64,000 bases of DNA from Dicyema japonicum. Taxonomy: Eukaryota; Animalia; Dicyemida. The notes beneath the pieces were generated by a model. It had not been told where the DNA came from. It saw only the letters and a list, made by a program, of their open reading frames with translations, and ran no database searches. The translations under genes and the position numbers were made by a program. The DNA lies in assembly GCA_011109175.1 (NCBI GenBank), contig RDEW01000023.1, forward strand, positions 862,468 through 926,467. The letters are read 5' to 3'. The first letter of the stretch is position 1. Each line of letters begins with the position of its first letter. Below, in pieces: positions 5,715 through 60,100 of this stretch.

Positions 5715-7460
5715 TATCAATTATGAGGAATATGAAATAATCAAACGCATCATTAAAGACCAAGTATTTCCAAGTACCAACAGGTATAATAAATTTCGTC
5801 TTCTACAAAAAGCAAGAAATTTATGATGATCAACGACAAATGTATCTGAAAGATCAGAATGGAAATCACAAGCTTGTCATTTGTATGGACAATGACAATG
5901 AGATGGATGTTTTGACCTCAGCACTCCATAACCAGGTTCATCTTGGAATGAATAAAATAAAGGATCTCCGCAATAAACACTATTTCCACATTAAAAGAAG
6001 TGTTATCCGTAGAGTAATTAATTCTTGTGAAATCTGTAAGTTTTCTACTCCTATAAAAGTTTGTTTTTTGGTAATATTTTAATAGACAAAGAACATCATA
6101 TCATTGCGTTAAAACCAAATGAAAGGATTCAAATAGATCTTGATGATCTGAAAAGATTTTATTCTGTCAACGGTGAATACAAATGAATGCTCACTGTAAT
6201 TGATGTATATTCAAAGTTGCCATAACAAGAAAATTAAAAAACGAATCTGATTTTGAAGTAAGATGCTTAAAATCATATATTTAATTTAGGTTTCAATGGA
6301 ATTAAAAAGCATATTCTATGAATAAGCCGGGTGGCATAGTGGCTAGGTGTCGGGCTTAAGTGGCTTAGGTTACGGGTCCGATTCTCGCTGCTGTTCACCT
6401 GGTGAAAGGTTCCACGCATCTACGATGCAAAAAGGGATTGACGAGTGACGCCGTCATCAGTGGATACTCACTGCGGAACTGGATTGTCTAGAAAGGACCC
6501 ACACAAAAAAAAGTGAAGATCATACCTTGGTTCTACGATTAGTTAAAAATTAACTGTTCTTTACTTAAATAAAGAGTTTGTCCTGCCTATGCGGAGCTAT
6601 AAATACTATGGCTCTCGTGAAAAGGCTTTATTATTTTTATTCTATGAATATGGGCCTTGAATGATTTTACAATCAGACAATGGTACAGAATTTAAAAAAT
6701 CTGATATTCGGGCACTTACTAATGAATTTAATATTAAACAAGTTCACGGAAGACCAAACCATCCTCGATCTCAAGGTATTCAGTTGTTTGTATATATTTT
6801 AAGGTATCATAGAACGATTCAATCAAACCATCACACGGATTCTGTCGAAAATGATGGCAAAAAACGCTGAAAAATTTTGGATTCAAATGTTACCAAGTGC
6901 CACTTATATGCATTACATAACTGTTCATTCGTCGAGCGGACGAACACCTTTTGAGATGTATAGAGGCATTCCTGGTTTAATACTGTTACAGTAAATGATG
7001 GTTGACTTAATTTTTAAAATTTTGACATAGATTTGGAAAATGATATTTGCGACGAGACAGTAAATACTGATGTCGTTCTGTATGATGGGTCGATAGAAGA
7101 AACAAATAATGAATATACAACTCTGCATGTGAAATGGGTTACAAAAAATGATTTTAAAATTAGAAAACTTTAAACTTAAGTTCATAAAACCAAATTTGAA
7201 TTCACTTTATTTTAAGAGGATGAACAAAAAGATCATGGTAAATACACGTTTTCTATAGGGGATCAAGTTTTTATTAAATAATTAAATGTAGGTTAGAGTT
7301 TTAAAAGATTATGGAACTAATCCTTCTCTAAGGTTGAATAAATTTGAGAGTCCATACAGTGAGCATGTAGAAGTCTTAAGTTTATTATCAAACAATCGTG
7401 TAGAGGTTAGAATGTAAAAAAATATTTTTAGGTTGTTTATCAACTGGTGAAAAAAAATAT
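5715..7460 (+). mobile_element. Ginger-like DD35E integrase gene (copy B) with 4 tiny introns, disrupted by a SINE and by stops/frameshifts
   Basis: HHCC zinc domain (H-NQV-H...CEIC), IQIDL, VIDVYSK, ILQSDNGTEF, HPRSQG^IIERFNQT. Introns at 6059-6085, 6258-6289, 6776-6803 and 7267-7291. No RT/RNase H nearby; TIRs not confidently found. Confidence 0.8.
6325..6637 (+). mobile_element. tRNA-derived SINE, copy 1
   Basis: A-box TGGCATAGTGG, B-box-like GGTCCGATTC, (TTA)n tail, perfect 13-bp TSD TATTCTATGAATA (6312-6324 / 6638-6650). Removing the SINE and one TSD restores the integrase frame (IFYEYGP). Confidence 0.93.
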
Positions 7461-25100: not shown

Positions 25101-25153
25101 CGTAGCAATTTAATAGCCTTGTCAACATCATTGGGGGTGAAGAAAGTGGAATA
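22146..25153 (-). mobile_element. LINE family 'Y' (RT), interrupted by a pogo element
   Basis: QHGFR, FIDIQKAFD, GV.QGSPLS..LFN, SYADDL, ending ..GIT* with a (TAAA)n tail. The N-terminal piece GPDSIYTIHLKHLG lies beyond the pogo at 24989-25150. Confidence 0.85.
23468..24988 (+). mobile_element. pogo/Tigger DNA transposon, decayed
   Basis: 24-bp TIRs CAGTAAACCATCATTAGTCCGAAC / GTTCGGATTAATGAGGGTTTACTG (2 mismatches); TA on the left, AA on the right. DDE_1 motifs SKVRIT, LLIDN and LPKNTTAQLQP.DAGII..FK..YRK. Confidence 0.88.
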
Positions 25154-25161
25154 TGGTTTTT

Positions 25162-28100
25162 AAAATTAAATTATTAACCCCGGCTTCGCCAGCAAGTGGG
25201 AAGCCGGCGACCATCAGAGAGCGTGCAGTCCGGACAGGCCGCTCCCAGAGATCCTCGACTTTTGCATCCGGTGGTCCAGGGCAGGGAAAAAGGTCCCGAA
25301 CTACTCTGCCAGCCAGAAAAGGGTGGTGTCCACATCGTAGGCGAGCCAGTCCGATTCTGATCTTCCTCGGGAGCGATTGTTCCGTTGGACTGATATCAGG
25401 GGGGAAGCGCTCCAAGACTTTGTTATATTGAAGTGTCCTAATGGCCCGTGTTGAGATGAAATCATGGATTCGGCGGGTCCAAGTTGAGTCTTCTTGAGGG
25501 GGGGTGATCTTCGACAAGGCTCTTTGTAGGTCAAAGAGGGTCCTGCGTATGTATCTGCGGTTATTGTTACTTAGCAGCGTGAACTGGGTGATTCGGGTCG
25601 AACGACTGCCGTAGGAATTGTAAATTACGCATTTCCAGGTGGTCATAGAGCGGGAGGATTTTCGACTCCCAATGTAAATGGTCGGTGGGGGTTGACTTTA
25701 ACAGCCAGTTATTATTCTCAGCGCCGAGTTTTGCACTTTCTGCAGTTCTTGAGAAAGGGACAAGGAGATTGAGGGGGCCCAACTTGGTGAGGCGTAGTTG
25801 AGTGTAGTCCTGATGAACTGTTTGTAGAGAAGAGTTAAGTTTTCTTTTTGCTGACCGTTTGAGTGGCCAGCTACTGCCCGTAATATGTTAAGTTTCCGCT
25901 TGGCTTTTGTCATTACTTCCTCCACTTGTCTGTTGAAACAGAGTGAAGGATCGAAGACAACTCCAAGGATCTTCGGGTATTTATTTAAGGGGAGTGGTTC
26001 GTCCAACGAGAGTGTGGGGTTTAGGTTGAATTGTCTTCGATCGGTTGTGAACAGGGTAGCTGATGACTTCGAGGTGGAAACACTCATCCAGTTTAAGTTC
26101 ATCCAGTCGGATAGCAAGTTCAGGTGGTACTGCACTTTTTCGGTGGCCAGTCGAACATCGCCACTCCTGGATGCGATTACTAGATCATCGGCATATGTCA
26201 ATAGTAACGTATTTTGGGTTGTTGGGATGTCTTTGACGTAAAGGTTGAAAAGTGAGGGTGAAAGGACTGATCCCTGGGGAACACCGTTTGGTAGGAGTCG
26301 ATATCTTGATAGATTTGAATATAGACACGTATGACCCAGTCTTCCCGAGAGGAAATTTGTGAGCCATGACTTCCATACAGAGGGAATATTTGAAGAATAG
26401 ATCTTGTTGCAGAGGACCACACGGGAGATTCTGTCGAAAGCTTTAGTTAGGTCAATAGAGGCCAAGACAGTTCGTTCCGGGGGTTTGCAGTTGTTGAAAC
26501 CGTTGGAGATGTATTGGGTTAGTGTCAGTAAGTGCGTGGTGGTCGAGTGTAAAGGACGGAAACCATGTTGTGAGTCGGAGAGGTCGAGGTAGGGGGTGAT
26601 TTCGTTAAGAATGATCCTTTCGAGGATTTTTGAGACAACAGATGTTAAGGAAATTGGCCTGAACGAAGAGGGCAAGGAGGAGGCTTTGTTGTTCTTGAGT
26701 ATTGGGATAATGTTCGACTTCTTCCATAACATCGGGATGAAACACCTGTTGATGGAGAATTCGTAGATATCTTTAAGTGCCAAGAGCCCGTTTGGACCGA
26801 GGTGCTTTAGGTGGAATATGCTGATCCGATCGGGTCCCGTGGCTGGTGAGTTTCTTGAGTTTGTAATGAGGTTTTGAACATGACTTACTGATACTTCGAA
26901 TCGTGCCTTTGTTACCCTTGGGGGTTTAGTAATATGAGGTCGATTTTCTTTATTCATTGGAATATGACTCATTTTGCAATAGTGAGTCATCAAGTCATTT
27001 GCCTGGCAGTGGAAATCTTTCGTTTGGTTGTCCTTTCCAAGTCTACCTCCATGGGTTGTGCTCGATTCGGTTTGATTTGATTGTATTTCTCTGATAAATC
27101 TCCAGAAACTTTGGGGTTTTGATTTTGGATTCAATCGAGAGACGAAAGTGGACCACTTCTCCTTTTTGAGCTCCGTAATGAGGTGGGTTATCTTCTTGTT
27201 TAGGGAAGAAATTTCATCTTGGAGTTGCTGGTTGGTTGTTCGGGAACGTTTTAGGCGTCTTCTCTCACAGATGAGATCCAATATTTCTTTGTTGAAAAAT
27301 AGTTTGTAATCATGGATGAATCCTTTAGGGACGTGCTTTCTATCCGCCGAAAGGATGGCTGAGTTGAAATGTGCAATGGCTTTGTCTGGAGAGGTAAAAT
27401 TTTCACAGAGAAGTTTTCCAGCGACGTTTCGACGTCAACCGTGAAGTCGATCCATCTCGCCCTTTTGTAGTTCACATAGGTTCGCCTCGACATAGTTCGT
27501 CCGAAATGCAAGAAGATGTCGATCAGAATAGGGTTATGATCTGAGGGTAAGTCATATCTGACATCCCAGTAGATCGATTTTGCAAGGGGAGCTGAGCATA
27601 TGGAGAGGTCGGGAGACGTGTTAGGATCCCCAGGGCGTGTTCCACATCTCGTGTGTTGGCGGGGGTTATTAATATCACTAGGTGTTCCAGTTCAGAGATC
27701 ACTTGTTTCCCTCTGTGGTCCGAATTCTGGTTTCGGAACCATAGTGGATCTTTAGCGTTTAGATCGCCGCAAATAACTATGTTTTCGTATAGTTGAAGGA
27801 ATTCTAGGTTTGGTCGGTAACTCTTCTGGCAGCAAGACGAAGGGGGAATGTAGATATTCAGAATTGTGTAAGGAGTTGACATAATATTGATGGTGATGGA
27901 TAGCAATTCCATATGTTTATCAGAAGCCGCTGTCAATGTGTGGTCAGTGGTATCCGTGAATGGGATGGAGTTGTGAATGAGGGTGACCAGGCCACCACCG
28001 TGAGATCCATTTGATCGCTCAGAACGGAGCAAAGAGTAGTTTTTGAATTTTGGTGTTTGGGAGAAGGCAGACAAACGTGACTCCTGTAGAAGGGCAATGT

Positions 28101-28399
28101 CAATGCGGTGTTTAACAAAGTACTCAGCCAATTCGGTATGTTTCGAGGTGATTCCATTGGTGTTAAGTTGTAAGATTCTGATGGGTCTATTCTGCGGCCC
28201 TGGGTTTAGTTCAATGTCACCGGATGTCAGGAGGGATTCTTGGGAGCGAAAGCTTCGTGCCCGCTCAATGGTCGCCATCGAGATCTCCTTGAAGAGAGAC
28301 GATAGGGAAATAGTGTGGTTCTTTTTCATGTGTGCTGTGTAGGGCACAGGCACAACCAAATGACACCTCTTGTGAGCCACAACGTCATACAAGGGGAAG
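25162..28399 (-). mobile_element. Apparently full-length (~3.2 kb) Ingi/Vingi-like LINE: 2A-like peptide, APE and RT, with a few frameshifts
   Basis: ORF 27523-28419: GDIELNPGP, LQLNTNG, LQES, IYIPP, GDLNA. ORF 25698-27281: full RT with YADD. C-terminal PPDISPTEQSLPR..LARLRCG. TGGTTTTT direct repeat at 25154-25161 / 28400-28407 is the probable TSD. No ORF1, no RNase H. Confidence 0.88.
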
Positions 28400-28495
28400 T
28401 GGTTTTTGTTATAAACCAATAATCAAATTAACAAAAATATAAAGTTCAAATTAAATTATTATTTAAAATAGTAATTTAAATTTGCTGACTTCGTG

Positions 28496-31325: not shown

Positions 31326-32760
31326 CTTTGATTCTTAAGATAACAGATAACATGATTTATTCGCAAAACCCCAACTAACTAAACAAGGTAAGAGCCATTA
31401 ACTAAAGAGGAAAGCCAAGATTTGGGGTCGTCTATATCGGGGCACTCTCATGAGACACCGTATGTCTCTTCTCCGTAAAAAGCCCCAATTACAATGCGAG
31501 TTTCCACAAGCAATGTAATAAATCACCGATTCTTCTCGTTTTTCTTTCGTATTCGTCATCAATTTCAGATGCTAAATCCAATCCATGTGCGAGTTTAATT
31601 GCATACCTTCTTGTCTTTTCTAATTTAGTTAGTAGGACTGATTCCTCCTCTGTTTTAAACCAACCTTGATATCCATATATTAGGAAAGGTTCAATACACG
31701 TTTTGTAGACAAACATAAAAGTATCTGGAGACAAATGAAAGCGGAGTAGGGACTTGAGCATTCCCGTAGCTTTCTCTCTTCGTATTTTGATGTGCTCTTT
31801 AAACGATCCTTTTTTGTTAATGCATACTCCAAGGTATATCAGGTTTTCCGAGAACTTAACATTCCCTGTATCAACATATTGATTCTTCCTATTTCTCGCT
31901 ATCCAGGTTACAGAACTTTTTTCTCTTGATAATGTCAATCCATTATTCCGACACCAATCTTCGATTTTCGACATATGAGCTAATGTTCTTTTCCATGATA
32001 TTGATTTATTTATACTAGTGTCCAAAATTAGAATGTCGTCTGCGTAAATTATCATTTTGGTATTGATGTGTCCGGTTTTGGCACCTCGCTCATTATACAG
32101 TTAAAGAGGAGGGGACTCAAAATTGAACCTTGTGGAACACCTCTACTTAGTTTTATCTTTTTAGAGAGCATATTTCCCACACGAATATAAGACTCTCTTC
32201 CCATAAGGAAGTCTCTAATCCACATGAGCGCCGACTTTCCAATGTTCGCTTTTGACAATGTCTCGAGAAGTCCCTCATGCCAGACACTGTCAAAAGCCTT
32301 GGATATGTCCAAACACGTTGCAGTAAGGTATTCTTTCTTACTTATAGATTCTTGAATTGACTTCCTAAGTTCTCGGATGCAGTCTTCAGTTCCTCTATTT
32401 TTACGGAACCCCCACTGATTGTTTGCAAGAAAATTGTTTTCCTCAACCACTTTTGATAATCTATTGAAGACAATTTTCTCCATAATTTTTGAAGTTGAAC
32501 AAATAAGACTAATTGGTCTATAATTTTCTGGATTAGATCTTGATTTTCCTTTCTTTCCAATCATCCGAACAATCGACTTTTTCCAGGTCGATGGAACGTG
32601 AGCAAGTTTCCACGAGGCATTATAAAGCATGGTTAATGCATCAATTAACATAGCATTTGCATTCTTGAATATTTTCATTGGGATAAAATCCCATCCAGGG
32701 GTTTTGTTCTTGCAGCTACAAATCGCAATTTTTACTTCTTCAGGGGAAATAGGGTACACA
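31326..32760 (-). mobile_element. 5'-truncated LINE W (RT and 3' UTR)
   Basis: ORFs 32052-32759 and 31489-32055: YRPISL, QWGFR, LDISKAFDSVWH, GVPQGSILSPLLF, YADD. Confidence 0.9.
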
Positions 32761-41870: not shown

Positions 41871-41950
41871 CTTTTATTTATTCTATGATTAATAAAATTC
41901 TAAATTTCTGGTATTTTTTAAATAAGAAAAAATATCATTTTATTAACTTA

Positions 41951-43607
41951 CAGGGTTTTCCTATTTATTTAATAACTTTGTCATAAAATTTAATAACTTT
42001 GTCAAAAAATTTAATAACTTTGTCATAAAATTTAATAACTTTGTCATAAAGTTTAATAACTTTGTCATAAAATTTAATAACTTCGTCAAAATATTTAATA
42101 ACTTTGTCAAAATGCTAAATAATTTTGTCAAAATGTTTAATAACTTTGTCAAAATGTTTAATAACTTTGTCAAGGGTCAAATTAAAAAAAACCAATTTTA
42201 TAATTAATTGAAAAAAACAACTGTAAATTAAAATTCTTCATAAGCTAATGCTTTAACTAAATAGCTCCGCATGTGGCTATACAAATTATTGCACACATCT
42301 GATGGAATTTCTCCGATGTTTTGGATTGCGTTTATTAATTCCTCAGAGTTCCTACAATTTTTCTTTTTGATGTTATTTTTCCAAACAGAAAAAAACTCTT
42401 CAATTGGATTGAGTTGAGGAGTATAAGGAGGCAAAAAATACAATTCATACCCTATACACGTTAAAAATTAATTGGATACCAGTTCCGAATACAACATTTT
42501 TTAATTGCTCGCTCTTGTGAATTGATGCATTGTCACATATCAATACCATGTCTTAAATATAATATATAACCATACTTTTTTTCCCTGCATGTTCAAGCTT
42601 ATAATTAAGCTGTATTACAAAATCAATGAACGTCTCTGCGCGATAAGGGGAGGAATTGATTTCGTAATGTAAAAGGCCGTCCACAGAAATAGCAGCACAA
42701 ATAGAAAAATTTTTCTCTCTTATGTTTCTAATACATTTTTTCGGAGTAACTCCTTTTATAGATCTTCCAAATTTGGATCTCATAGAACAATTGACTCCCA
42801 TTTCGTCTATAAAAATAAGCCGTTGATCAATTTCAATTATTTTTCTGGCAAATCTATATCTTTCTTCCATATTTATTGTAGAATTTCTCGCCATAGGTAC
42901 AAATTGAATCTTTTTAAAACTATATCCAAATGTATCTAGCGTCCTATTTATTGTCGATAAAGAGACATTTTTTCTTTGCACATCAAATAAAGAATTTTTT
43001 AAATTTTCAGAGTAAATGAAGCATCTTCTTCAATTTTTTTAGTCAAAAATAAGATGTCCGATGAATTAAGTTTTTTTTTTTCGTCCTCAATTAATTCTTA
43101 TTAAAGCAAAACATCCTGTATTTTTGTATTTTTTGACGATAGAAACAACTGTCTGATAGTTAATACAGATGTCTTTTCTTATTTTTGAATAAGCTAACCC
43201 TGCTTCATATTTATTTATAATAAGTTTTCGGTTTTCTTCGGATACAGTAGTATTTTTGTTTTTGTAACTATTCATTTAATTCATTTTGCACAAAAATTTG
43301 TATTTATAGGAACTTAATAATCCAATATATATAAATAATGATCTAATAAATATAAATAATGATCTAATAAAAATAAATAATTATCTCAATAAATATAAAT
43401 AGTAATCCCAAAAATATAAATAATAATCTTTACTGAGTTATTAAACATTTTGACAAAGTTATTAAACATTTTGACAAAGTTATTAAGTATTTTGACGAAT
43501 TATTAACATTTTGACAAAGTTATTAAATTTTATGACAAAGTTATTAAATTTTTTGACAAAGTTATTAAATTTTATGACAAAGTTATTAAATAAATAGGAA
43601 AACCCTG
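41951..43607 (-). mobile_element. Tc1/IS630-type DD34E transposon with long, internally repetitive TIRs
   Basis: TA|CAGGGTTTTCCTATTTATTTAATAAC...GTTATTAAATAAATAGGAAAACCCTG|TA; TIRs are built of 21-bp units (TAATAACTTTGTCAAAATGTT-like), about 10 on the left and 7 on the right. Confidence 0.95.
42228..43275 (-). CDS. Tc1-family transposase with two micro-introns; N-terminal part has a TGA and homopolymer frameshifts
   Basis: HTH N-terminus, FIDEMG, ICDNASIH, LPPYTPQLNPIEE; introns at 42552-42575 (24 nt) and 42452-42479 (28 nt). Confidence 0.85.
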
Positions 43608-43609
43608 TA

Positions 43610-48100: not shown

Positions 48101-51100
48101 TTATAAATGTATATGCTCATACATTTCCAAAACTCTCTAAAACCCAACGGAACTGAAATATTTTAACAGTTCAATATCCACAACCCTTATGGTAATATCC
48201 ACGAGGTATGTACTTTACATAAGTGCGAGATTGGAACGCGAAAGTCGGAAAATGTGCGGAGAACTGAGCTTCATGGGTACCCATGGGTGAGGTCAGAAAA
48301 ACATGTCTGAAGCAACTATGGCCAACTTTGTGATTAATAAACAATTATTCATTTGCAACACAGCATTCCAGCACGCTGCAAGGCATATCAAGACCTGGAC
48401 TGATGAACGCCGAGACTTAAATGGACATTTAATCAAAATATATAACCAATTTGACTACATTCTGTTTCGACAATCACAGAAAACCCTATTCTCAGATTCC
48501 AGAACATATGGAAGGAACGCTAACATAGAGTGACTATAAACTATTAGTAATCACACTTCTCTTAAAGAAAAGATTTTGGATTAACAGAGTCAAAAACAGA
48601 CACAGAGAAGTTAGATACGCATTCGAATTCTAAAGAAACATTCTTATCTGCGTAAATAGCTACGCAGATAATATATCACAAACTATAGAATCGTTCAATC
48701 TCAATTTACCTGCTGGAAGTTTATGGAATAAACTCGTTGAAAAATAAAGAAAAAATCCCAGAATATCCACGAAACATTGCTACAGAACTTTGCAAATGAA
48801 GTAGGATAGTACTAACACGTATATGCATCTGTAAAGATGCTATCGCGAAAAAAGTATTCTGCAAATCTAACAGTTCATGATGAACTAGGAAGAACCATTT
48901 ACAACAACCAGGAAACCTACATACACCATAGCTAATCACTTAGAAAAATATTTCAATTTTTATAAGAAGAATCACTTTATGCGTTTGATGGACTCCCCAG
49001 AAAGCTATCACCAATTAAAACTTAACAAATTTAAAAACTGTGACTAGACTAAACAACTCAACAGCCCCAGAGCCTAGATATGTTAATGCAGAGCTCATAA
49101 AATACGCTCATGAAGATTTTCTAAACTCATTACTTACATTCCGAACAAAACATTTGAGGAATACTCCAGAATAAAATTGGAATCAGAAAATTAATCCCTT
49201 TACATAACTAAAAAGGAAATAAAATAGCTAAACAGCTAAGACCAATCAAACATGACTGAGCAAAATTCTATCGTAATCGCTGTAGACAGAATAAAAGCCC
49301 CACTACGTTGATTTATCGAAGCTAGCCAAAGTGGGTTTTCTTTGGAAGATCAACTTCCGATGCCGTTTGGAGCCACAAATGGATCTGTGCTTCATGCCAA
49401 AAATATAAAGATGAGTACCATATAATGGGAATCGACCTATCTAAGGCATTAGAGTCAATCAGTATATCAAGATAATACGAATATTAACACCACTATCAAG
49501 GAAGATTGCATCAGAATAATTCGTTATCTATTCTCCTCCACTCAACTATTTTTCCAGCTCGGAAATCAGAATTCCAGAGTATTAAGAACAAACAAAGGCA
49601 CCCCTCAAAGAGACGGCAAATCCCCGTTATTATTCATCACAAATCTGGAAGGAAATCCTACAATTGCATAGCTGACAGATGGCTCAATTAATTGTTTGTG
49701 CAATTTATTTATTTAACCCCAAGACCACCAGGATAGATAGGTCAAAACTGACTAATTAGGTGATCCCAGCTACCAGTAACATCCGAACTCTCTTCATTTG
49801 GTCTTCTGATGATCCAACCGCATTCCAGATGCGTCTTCTCTTCCTTCTGCAAAGGAATTCTATCGGCGTGCACTTTTTTATTACCGACCGAAATCCCTCT
49901 GCATGGGCCACCTTTTCCTTGATTGGGTTTCCCAGTTCCTTTTAGAAACGTAGGAAATCCTTGCCATTTTTCAACGTTTCTTCATCAGAAACGATTGACT
50001 CGAGAACGTTAAAGAGAGTCGAAAATTACACCAATGATCTTCTGAGTCCTCGTAAAAGGGATGGGAGTGTTTCCGATGGATATCTTGACTCCACCTTTAA
50101 ATCTTCTGTCCGTAGTGAATAATGTGAACTGAGACTTGGATGCTGATACACATAACATATTTGAAGATGGCCAGTGACAACTCTTGTTAGGTGTGTCTGA
50201 ACAGTTGCTACAGCCATGGTTGGAGATTTATTTCTTGCAGAGATAATTAGGTCGTCTGCATAGGATAAAAACATAGTGTCCTGATCATTGGTAGTAGCTA
50301 GGTCATGTAGAAAAAGGTTAAAAATAAGAGAAGATAAATCGGAGCCTTGCAGAACCCCATTGTAAAGTAGTCTTAATTTTGAAGAGCTTTTGTCAATTCG
50401 GACCCTTCCGCGTCGTTCAGTTAAGAAGTTTTCCAGCCATAGCTTGATGTTTGGGTGTAAGTTCGAGTTAAAAATCTTTTGAGTTAGGAGTTTCCTCGGA
50501 ACATATTCAAAGGCCTTCTGTATGTCGATGAATAGTAAGGCCGTCCGTAAGTGTGTTCTCATGTTGAAGCCGTAAGTAATAAACTGCAGGTGTGCTTATT
50601 AATAATAACTTTACTAACGTTGTTTTGGTGTGCTTATTATTAATAACAACGATCTACAAGAGCTATACTATTAAAAATTTGAAGAGGAGATCAAGACAGT
50701 TCGCACATCTATATAAACATAAAAGACGTCAATTCCTTACCATTCTCTAGCTTTTGATTACTCTGGAAATGTGTTTATACAGATCTCTATTACATTGAGA
50801 ATTGAGCCATCAAAATTTCTAACATGCTATACTCGTTCGACTTGACAAGGGTCAATAAGACTGAGAGACAAAGGCTTAGGTATCTTCCGAATTTGGCTAA
50901 TCGATTCTAACTTCATGCTTTCGTCTTTCTTTAGACAGTCTCTCAGTTTTTTGTTTAAGGATAGCTTAATTGCAGTTCTAATCTTTTTTCCGAGGTATAA
51001 GCACATATCACAAAAGAACCAGTCCTCGCATCAATAAAGTACTCCAAGAAACATGAGACTTGTTTTACAAATATTACTGAGTCTTACAAAAAATCGTAAT

Positions 51101-57100: not shown

Positions 57101-60100
57101 AATGGGATTTGCGGTGGATACCAGACTCCGGGAATATATAAAAGAATATTGAAAGTGAATGACAGAATTTGCGTAATTGAATTAGAAACTGGATCTAACT
57201 CTACAATTACAATTATAAATGTATATGCTCATACATTTCAAAAACTCTCTAAAACCCAACGGAACTGAAATATTTTAACAGTTCAATATCCACAACCCTT
57301 ATGGTAATATCCACGAGGTATGTACTTTACATAAGTGGAGATTGGAACGCGAAAGTCGGAAAATGTGCGGAGAACTGAGCTTCATGGATACCCATGGGTG
57401 AGGTCAGAAAAACATGTCTGAAGCAACTATGGCCAACTTTGTGATTAATAAACAATTATTCATTTGCAACACAGCATTTCAGCACGCTGCAAGGCATATC
57501 AAGACCTGGACTGATGAACGCCGAGACTTAAATGGACATTTAATCAAAATATATAACCAATTGACTACATTCTGTGTCGACAATCACAGAAAACCCTATT
57601 TTTAGATTCCAGAACATATGGATGGAACGCTAACATCGAGTGATCATAAACTATTGGTAATCAAATTTCTCCTAAAGAAGAAGATTTTGGATTAACAGAG
57701 TCAAAAACAGACACAGAGAACTTAGATACGCATTCGAATTCTAAAGAAACATTCTTATCTACGTAAATAGCTACTCAGATAATATATCACAAACTATAGA
57801 ATCGTTCAATCTCAATTTACCTGCTGGAAGTTTATGGAATAAACTCGTTGAAAAATAAAGAAAAAATCCCAGAATATCCACGAAACATAGCTACAGAACC
57901 TTGTAAATGAAGTAGGATAGTACTAACACGTATATGCATCTGTAAAGATGCTATCGCGAAAGAAGTATTCTGCAAATCTTACAGTTCATGATGAACTAGG
58001 AAGAATCATTTACAACAACCAGGAACCTACAGACACCATAGCTAATAACTTAGAAAAATATTTCAATTTTTATAAGAAGAATCACTTTATGCGTTTGATG
58101 GACTCCCCAGAAAGCTATCACCAATTAAAACTTAACAGAATTTTAAAAACTGTGACTAGACTAAAAAAACAGCCCAGAGATATGTTAATGCAGAGCTCAT
58201 AAAATACGCTCATGAAGATTTTCTAAACTCATTACTTACATTCCGAACAAAACATTTGAGGAATACTCCAGAATAAAATTGGAATCAGAAAATTAATCCC
58301 TTTACATAAAACTGAAAAAGAAATAAAATAGCTAAACAGCTTAAGACCAATCAAACATGACTGAGCAAAATTCTATCGTAATCGCTGTAGACAGAATAAA
58401 AGCCCTACTACGTTGATTTATCGAAGCTAACCAAAGTGGGTTTGTCTTTGGAAGATCAACTTCCGATGCCGTTTGGAGCCACAAATGGATCTGTTCTTCC
58501 TGCCAAAAATATAAAGATGAGTACCATATAATGGGAATCGACCTATCTAAGGCATTTGACTCAATCAGTATATCAAGATAATACAAATATTAACACCACT
58601 ATCAAGGAAGATTGCATCAGAATAATTCGTTATCTACTCTCCTCCACTCAACTATTTATCCAGCTCGGAAATCAGAATTCAAGAGTATTCGGAACAAAGA
58701 AGGGCACCCCTCAAGGAAAAGCCATATCTCCGGTATTATTCATCACATATCTGAAGGAAATCCTACTATTGCATAGCTGACAGATGGCTCAATTAATTGT
58801 TTGTGCAATTTATTTATTTAACCCCAAGACCACCAGGAAAGATAGGTCAAAACTGACTAATCATGTGATCCCAGCCTCCAGTAACATCCGAACTCTTTTC
58901 ATTTGGTCTTCTGATGATCCAACCGCATTCCGGATGCGTCTTCTCTTCCTTCTGCAAAGGAATTATATCGGCGTGCACTTTTTTATTACCGACCGAAATC
59001 CCTCTGCATGGGCCACCTTTTCCTTGATTGGGTTTCCCAGTTCCTTTTAGAAACGTAGGAAATCCTTGCCATTTTTCAACGTTTCTTCATCAGAAACGAG
59101 TGACTCGAGAACGTTAAAGAGAGTCGAAAATTACACCAATGATCTTCTGGCTCCTCGTAAAAGAGATGGGAGTGTTTCCGATGGATATCTTGATCCCACC
59201 TTAAAATCTTATGTCCGTAGTGAATAATGTGAACTGAGACTTGGATGCTGATACACATAACATATTTGAAGATGGCCAGTCACAACTCTGGTTAGGTGTG
59301 TCTGAACAGTTGCTACAGCCATGGTCGGAGATTTATTTCTTGCAGAGATAATTAGGTCGTCTGCATAGAATAAAAACATAGTGTCCTGATCATTGGTAGT
59401 AGCTAGGTCATGTAGAAAAAGGTTGAAAATAAGAGAAGATAAAGGGGAGCCTTGCAGAACCCCATTGTAAAGTAGTCTTAATTTTGAAAAAGTTTTGTCA
59501 ATTCGGACCCTTCCGCGTCGTCCAGTTAAGAAGTTTTCCAGCCATAGCTTGATGTTTGGGTGTAAGTTCGAGTTAAAAATCTTTTGAGTTAGGAGTTTCC
59601 TCGGAACATATTCAAAGGCCTTCTGTATGTCGATGAATACTAAGGCCGTCCGTAAGTGTGTTCTCATGTTGAAGCCGTAAGTAATAAACTGCGGTGTGCT
59701 TATTAATAATAACTTTACTAACGTTGTTTTCCGGTCTGCTTATTATTAATAACAACGATCTACAAGAACTATACTATTAAAAATTTGAAGAGGAGATCAA
59801 GACAGTTCGCACATCTATATAAACATAAAAGACGTCAATTCCTTAACATTCTCTAGCTTTTGATTACTCTGGAAATGTGTTTATACAGATCTCTATTACA
59901 TTGAGAATTGAGCCATCAAAATTTCTAACATGCTATACTCGTTCGACTTGACAAGGGTCAATAAGACTGAGAGACAAAGGCTTAGGTATCTTCCGAATTT
60001 GGCTAATCGATTCTAACTTCATGCTTTCGTCTTTCTTTAGACAGTCTCTCAGTTTTTTGTTTAAGGATAGCTTAATTGCAGTTCTAATCTTTTTTCCGAG

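Follow-up and report, generated by a model that had tools for sequence, protein, structure and literature searches.

A Tc1-like DD34E transposon family of Dicyema japonicum with two probable ultra-short introns in its transposase gene

The element and its insertion

The DNA analyzed here, called the window throughout, is a 64,000-nucleotide stretch of the genome of Dicyema japonicum, a parasite of the octopus kidney (GenBank assembly GCA_011109175.1, contig RDEW01000023.1, positions 862,468 to 926,467 of the forward strand). The window consists mostly of repeats, and no obvious host gene was found among its open reading frames of at least 110 aa, the large ones encoding LINE reverse transcriptase or endonuclease. 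A near full-length LINE with endonuclease/exonuclease/phosphatase and RVT_1 domains occupies 25128-28419 on the minus strand, and LINE-type reverse transcriptase fragments lie at 31489-32759, 50026-50562 and 59209-59667 on the same strand. The subject of this study is a complete Tc1-like element of 1657 bp with the following parts:

41951..43607, minus strand: complete Tc1-like element, with termini CAGGGTTTTCC to GGAAAACCCTG; homology with other copies is bounded there
43608..43609, no strand: TA target-site duplication on the 5' side, from flank comparison of two-ended copies
41949..41950, no strand: TA target-site duplication on the 3' side, from flank comparison of two-ended copies
43505..43607, minus strand: 5' terminal inverted repeat (TIR), inverted-repeat pair I1
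41951..42053, minus strand: 3' TIR, inverted-repeat pair I1
43436..43592, minus strand: 5'-end tandem array with a 21-bp unit, ~7.6 copies
41967..42173, minus strand: 3'-end tandem array with the same 21-bp unit, ~9.9 copies
43315..43429, minus strand: second 21-bp tandem array, with a unit unlike that of the TIRs, ~5.4 copies

The 5' and 3' TIR arms, each 105 nt counting the TA, are 98% complementary, and their 21-bp repeats are presumed to be transposase-binding sites. The second 21-bp array follows the one of the 5' TIR, ahead of the start codon, and is possibly a promoter or regulatory region. Searching the D. japonicum genome (67,542,437 bases in 377 contigs) gave 60 matches to the coding region at 84-98% identity, and the terminus was counted 86 times genome-wide, versus 0 for a control. 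All 15 two-ended copies are bordered by TA on both sides, and the flanks beyond it are unrelated. The 21-bp motif of the TIRs occurs, among the loci fetched from the genome, only in copies of this family and in none of the other Tc1-like loci; a motif private to the family points to a need for a transposase of its own.

Some termini lie only 124-412 bp apart, which suggests that they belong to MITE-like derivatives of the element. Internally deleted derivatives of this type, with both termini intact, range from ~124 bp to 1.3 kb (for example G000:C1:328790-328913, G000:C279:543430-543841 and loci L012, L017, L019, L026 and L027), and one common deletion, shared by L025, L026 and L027, takes out the region of the introns described below.

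The TA duplications, the inverted ends, a D-34-E catalytic triad and matches to Pfam domains and solved structures together assign the element to the Tc1-like DD34E cut-and-paste transposons, as a defective copy of a multicopy D. japonicum family. The original prediction, which had been made from the letters of the DNA, was right about this identity, with which the TA sites, TIRs, HTH region, DDE_3 domain and D-34-E spacing all agree. The matches to HTH_SB (E = 1.6e-8) and HTH_Tnp_Tc3_2 (E = 6.7e-7) both fall just under the curated Pfam cut-offs. When the family profile was compared with solved structures, the catalytic domain of SB100X (E = 1e-10) and the PAI subdomain of SB matched best, followed by Pax paired domains and, more weakly, by mariner Mos1.

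The transposase gene

The transposase gene is read from the minus strand and comprises three exons separated by two short segments, which we regard as candidate introns. Three defects lie in the upstream part of this copy. The gene features are:

42576..43275, minus strand: exon 1, with the ATG at 43275, HTH_SB, HTH_Tnp_Tc3_2 and DDE_3 positions 1-79
42552..42575, minus strand: candidate intron 1, 24 nt, phase 1, in codon 235
42480..42551, minus strand: exon 2, 72 nt, with the codon of the second catalytic D at 42534-42532
42452..42479, minus strand: candidate intron 2, 28 nt, phase 1, in codon 259
42228..42451, minus strand: exon 3, with the codon of the catalytic E at 42401-42399 and the stop codon at 42230-42228
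43087..43089, minus strand: TGA nonsense codon, private to the window copy (TGT in sister copies)
43071..43081, minus strand: run of 11 A, one A more than in the open-frame copies, a +1 frameshift
43005..43006, minus strand: site of a 1-base deletion relative to other copies, a -1 frameshift

The DNA-binding region, a paired-like HTH, lies in exon 1 together with the codon of the first catalytic D (42807-42805), and this exon is broken in the window copy. On the minus strand the open reading frames 42553-42981, 42445-42549 and 42228-42443 break where the two segments lie. The first segment begins GTATGG, ends TTTAAG and carries an in-frame TAA; the second begins GTATCC, ends TATAG and shifts the frame if retained. 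Their GC contents, 17% and 25%, respectively, are below the 30% of the exons. Both segments agree in position, length and GT..AG ends with what had been proposed for them (42575-42552, 24 nt with an in-frame TAA, and 42479-42452, 28 nt, minus strand).

The original prediction had, on the other hand, missed the TGA, the extra A and the absent base of the window copy. These were found by alignment with eleven other full-length copies together with frame checks. The stretch from ~43071 to 43006, between the two frameshifts, is out of frame; four stops are left even after both segments are removed, and the intact transposase gene of an autonomous copy is lacking. The window copy is dead, a transposase being impossible even if its transcript were spliced. 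Two sister copies, L002 (contig C157) and L003 (contig C331), have an open frame of 332 aa only with both segments removed. Unspliced, this frame is open for 241 codons and ends at codon 242, which is the TAA of intron 1. The proposal that transposase production depends on splicing is supported for the family, by virtue of the open frames of L002 and L003, but not for the copy on which it was based. Its corollary that unspliced RNA is non-productive is borne out by the stop at codon 242 in these two copies and by the frameshift that intron 2 imposes. As evidence for selection, the open frames of L002 and L003 are weak by themselves, the two copies being young and 98% identical.

A run of A just before intron 1 (42576-42582) is variable within the family, having six A instead of seven in about one quarter of the copies and of the read depth. 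The frame of six-A copies would be broken even after splicing. They are mostly 5'-deleted and non-autonomous, have one further common variant and are probably one dead sublineage.

Introns of the host

Introns of Dicyema genes measure 26.2 ± 1.9 nt (PMC2222250), and the mean intron length of the D. japonicum assembly (67.5 Mb in 377 scaffolds, GC 36.7%, 49% repeats) is 38 bp (PMC6736024). In a 2026 survey of 51 genomes, myxobolid myxozoans and D. japonicum were the only animals with introns below 30 nt, and the splice signals were described as reduced, to 'GTa' on the 5' side and to 'AG' on the 3' side (PMC13644364). Because the window offers no obvious host gene among its open reading frames, an aldolase gene elsewhere in the genome was used to show host introns: it contains four GT..AG introns of 23, 27, 23 and 23 nt, one of which ends AAAG. 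The gene is one of two class-I aldolase paralogues, L044 (G000:C79:1153653-1156994) and L045 (G000:C190), and the micro-introns of 23-27 nt are those of the C79 copy.

The window also contains an rve-type integrase gene (6661-6994, plus strand) with a 28-nt segment at 6776-6803 that starts GTA and ends AAG. Its removal joins H-P-R-S-Q-G to I-I-E-R-F-N-Q-T, by eye a canonical integrase motif, and the gene is the second transposon-type gene of the window with a predicted host-type micro-intron.

Comparative evidence for splicing

Homology and family searches were conducted with single exons or natural open reading frames, and joined translations were used for counts of frame, stops and codons. 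A word-based protein search with the natural 241-aa open reading frame of L002 returned two uninterrupted homologues, P0001 (336 aa) and P0002 (338 aa), with 44-46% identity to the query. In an exon-by-exon alignment with P0001, exon 1 corresponds to residues 8-237 without a gap, the codon split by intron 1 to residue 238 and exon 2 to residues 239-262, while exon 3 is in register from residue 263 and is aligned by BLAST from residue 267 to 336; the exons tile the intron-free homologues without gap or overlap. The Pfam DDE_3 domain is likewise recovered in three pieces, positions 1-79, 81-111 and 110-146, in this order, and since these cover the domain consecutively they make up one continuous domain.

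Removal of both segments yields the D-34-E spacing. In the sister copy L002 the triad then consists of D158, D241 and E276, the last two separated by 34 residues, and a hand count gives the same spacing for the window copy, so that the exact figure put forward in the original prediction is correct. Among full-length relatives, 41 of 43 have this spacing, and an alignment of all 43 contains no insertion or indel at either junction. A scan for GT..AG segments, 15-40 nt long and lying within ±30 nt of each site, found a single one per site that keeps the frame open, and it has the length required for colinearity with the homologues; the GT..AG deletion is unique among the frame-keeping deletions, being one of 245 at one site and one of 434 at the other.

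Both segments have GT..AG ends and a GTA start, matching the reduced signals of the host, and their lengths of 24 and 28 nt fall in the host intron range. Other genomic copies agree with the original prediction in that both segments are present in all 21 copies spanning the sites. Four public sequencing runs hold the stretch; they come from one sample and study, and none is on record as RNA. Their contigs are short and very deep with Nextera-like adapter ends, and the runs look like genomic DNA libraries. No joint at either intron site was found in the contigs of these four DNA-like runs, and DNA copies lacking the segments are thus unlikely to exist in the individual sampled. Together with the presence of both segments in every spanning copy, this indicates that the family was amplified after the segments had been acquired.

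Variation among the copies is consistent with past selection on the spliced product. Of the variants shared by at least two copies, 19 of 47 are synonymous in the spliced frame, versus an expected fraction of 0.198 (p = 9e-4), while singleton variants are near neutral. The enrichment is modest for exons 2 and 3 alone (8 of 19 shared variants, p = 0.016) and is not significant in the two other frames. On this comparative evidence we consider that the two segments are real spliceosomal introns of the ultra-short host class, removed by the host spliceosome, with a probability of roughly 0.85.

Relatives and origin of the introns

A profile search extended the set to ~100 relatives, from JGI, ENA and Logan contigs, from the mites Brevipalpus and Panonychus and from microsporidia, where they carry the annotators' label Tc3 transposase. 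In a maximum-likelihood tree of the sequence equivalent to exon 1, the dicyemid family forms a long branch within a clade that also contains P0001-P0015 (support 97/89), and this clade is nested among further intron-free relatives. Since all detected relatives are intron-free and the dicyemid family is nested among them, gain of the introns is the parsimonious reading, and the dicyemid lineage most likely acquired them before amplification of the copies now present. It should be noted that the set of homologues is biased toward intron-free genes, the protein database consisting of single-ORF calls among which intron-bearing relatives would be missed. The nearest Tc1 homologues, to which the original prediction had pointed for a comparison of intron gain, favor the idea, with no insertion in 43 relatives and a nested clade. 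Its statement that the element has adopted the intron class of its host stands as far as length and signals are concerned, which are host-like, and is better put as the gain of two introns in this lineage, the relatives being intron-free.

The catalytic domain is also without an intron in seven other Tc1-like loci of the D. japonicum genome, five of which are intact at 330-361 aa. Uninterrupted Tc1/mariner-like open reading frames in this size range (330-361 aa) are found at L047 (G000:C35:647300-650500), together with four places of equal score, and at L048, L050, L051 and L052. One intron-free Tc1/mariner-like family has at least five near-identical copies, which suggests that other, intron-free DNA transposons have recently been active in the genome.

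Tandem duplication of the downstream exon was considered as a source of the introns and rejected as unsupported. The start of intron 1 (S-M-V-I) can be compared with that of exon 2 (N-M-V-L), and the start of intron 2 resembles that of exon 3. The local alignment scores are not above background, however, with fractions of 0.38 and 0.12 of other windows scoring equally well.

The relatives closest to the family outside this genome are carried by two Logan contigs of run SRR20852515 (L031 and L032), 1.17 and 1.24 kb long. These have inverted repeats of 24-30 nt at both ends and resemble either complete small elements or contigs whose assembly broke off within TIRs. Such contig ends fit DNA or read-through RNA; the source type of these contigs does not affect the colinearity argument.

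Comparison with known systems

With Sleeping Beauty and Tc1 the Dicyema element has in common the D-34-E triad, the paired-like HTH and TA target sites, while its sequence similarity to them is remote. The presence of several predicted binding-site repeats in each inverted end resembles the IR/DR arrangement of Sleeping Beauty, which has two direct repeats per end, compared with 8-10 tandem 21-bp units in the Dicyema element. The coding regions of Sleeping Beauty and Tc1 are uninterrupted.

The closer relatives P0001-P0015, from Logan, JGI and ENA contigs of 1.1-4 kb, are 43-48% identical among themselves over their full length. Identity between the dicyemid exons and P0001 is 44% for exon 1 and 57% for exon 3. 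They resemble the dicyemid family in length (~330-340 aa) and D-34-E spacing and belong to the same clade, but differ from it in that each consists of one uninterrupted open reading frame and lacks both segments at the junctions.

A known precedent is Minos of Drosophila hydei, a Tc1-like element of ~1.8 kb with inverted ends of 254 bp, a TA target and a 60-bp intron in its transposase gene (PMC2874221). Minos and the Dicyema element are alike in size, in long inverted ends, in the TA target and in a transposase split by short intron sequence of the host type. Minos, however, has one intron of ordinary insect size, whereas the Dicyema element has two, of 24 and 28 nt, both in the catalytic domain around a 72-nt exon, and its ends are made of 21-bp arrays. 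An intron in a Tc1-like transposase gene is therefore already known from Minos, and the novelty of the Dicyema element lies in how many introns it has, how short they are and where they sit, as well as in the evidence for their gain. We found no literature on dicyemid transposons with introns.

Alternative explanations

The segments might instead be small inactivating insertions, the copies having descended from a dead master and been moved in trans by a transposase from elsewhere. Many copies are indeed decayed or internally deleted, and the runs that hold the sequence are DNA-like with none on record as RNA, both of which this explanation accommodates. It leaves unexplained why the insertions should have GT..AG ends, a GTA start and host-typical lengths and why their removal should restore exact colinearity, and neither a genomic copy nor a DNA contig without the segments was found. 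Moreover, the TIR motif is private to the family, so that nothing points to a matching transposase from another source, and the shared variants are biased toward synonymous changes in the spliced frame also downstream of the first stop. We therefore regard inactivating insertions as highly improbable. An assembly or sequencing artefact can be rejected, the segments being present in 21 independent genomic copies and in the contigs of four runs. If the segments are real introns, they could still be ancestral to the Tc1 clade and have been lost by the relatives rather than gained in dicyemids, and a homologue search that returns single-ORF proteins would render intron-bearing relatives invisible. 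The family is nested, however, among more than 40 intron-free relatives from many sources, mites, microsporidia and metagenomes among them, which would call for many independent precise losses, and the intron sizes fit the peculiar class of this host; ancestral introns are accordingly very unlikely.

A different question is whether the introns, if real, serve as a regulated control point. In the P element of Drosophila, retention of the third intron (IVS3) truncates the transposase ahead of its catalytic residues. The P element belongs to a different superfamily and is like the Dicyema element in logic only. By analogy, stage- or cell-specific retention in Dicyema could produce a truncated repressor of transposition, ~241 or 268 aa long and with an incomplete DDE triad: both introns lie within the catalytic domain, retention of intron 1 would leave a frame of 241 codons that still includes the whole HTH domain, and retention of intron 2 would lead to a frame that ends 10 codons later. 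Against such regulation it must be said that unspliced RNA is non-productive wherever an intron interrupts coding sequence, which deprives the placement of these two of special weight as evidence, and that no regulatory motif was identified. We consider a P-element-like control point unlikely, and keep introns of the host class as the preferred explanation.

Proposed mechanism

In the model that we favor, both introns would be excised from the transcript of an intact copy by the spliceosome of the host, for which introns of ~23-30 nt are routine substrates, and a 332-aa transposase could then be made. This protein, with its paired-like HTH and the triad D158, D241 and E276 (L002 numbering), would bind the 21-bp repeats in the inverted ends and transfer the element to new TA sites by cut-and-paste. 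Unspliced RNA would give no active enzyme, owing either to the TAA stop in intron 1 or to the frameshift in intron 2; the predicted products, ~241 or 268 aa, would keep the DNA-binding domain.

Implications

Introns below 30 nt are exceptional in animals. For the question of how and when genomes with such introns gain them, a young transposon with many copies and with intron-free relatives is a clear example, in which two introns were gained at known positions, and its dozens of copies of different ages provide an internal clock. If the introns are removed as proposed, the transposase is predicted to be made only in hosts that splice introns of 24-28 nt, which bears on horizontal transfer of the element and on its possible use as a tool.

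We raise more tentatively, as a possibility that we think somewhat doubtful, that unrelated superfamilies of DNA transposons, represented by the Tc1-like family and by the rve-type integrase gene at 6661-6994, have each gained host-type micro-introns through an active and general intron-creating process. Alternatively, recurrent gain may reflect a benefit of intron acquisition to resident transposons, for example by locking their expression to a host that splices introns of 24-28 nt. A general intron-creating process, if it exists, would be datable by the divergence of transposon copies, and if the same is true of other transposon superfamilies of this genome, intron gain in dicyemids would be recurrent and open to study.
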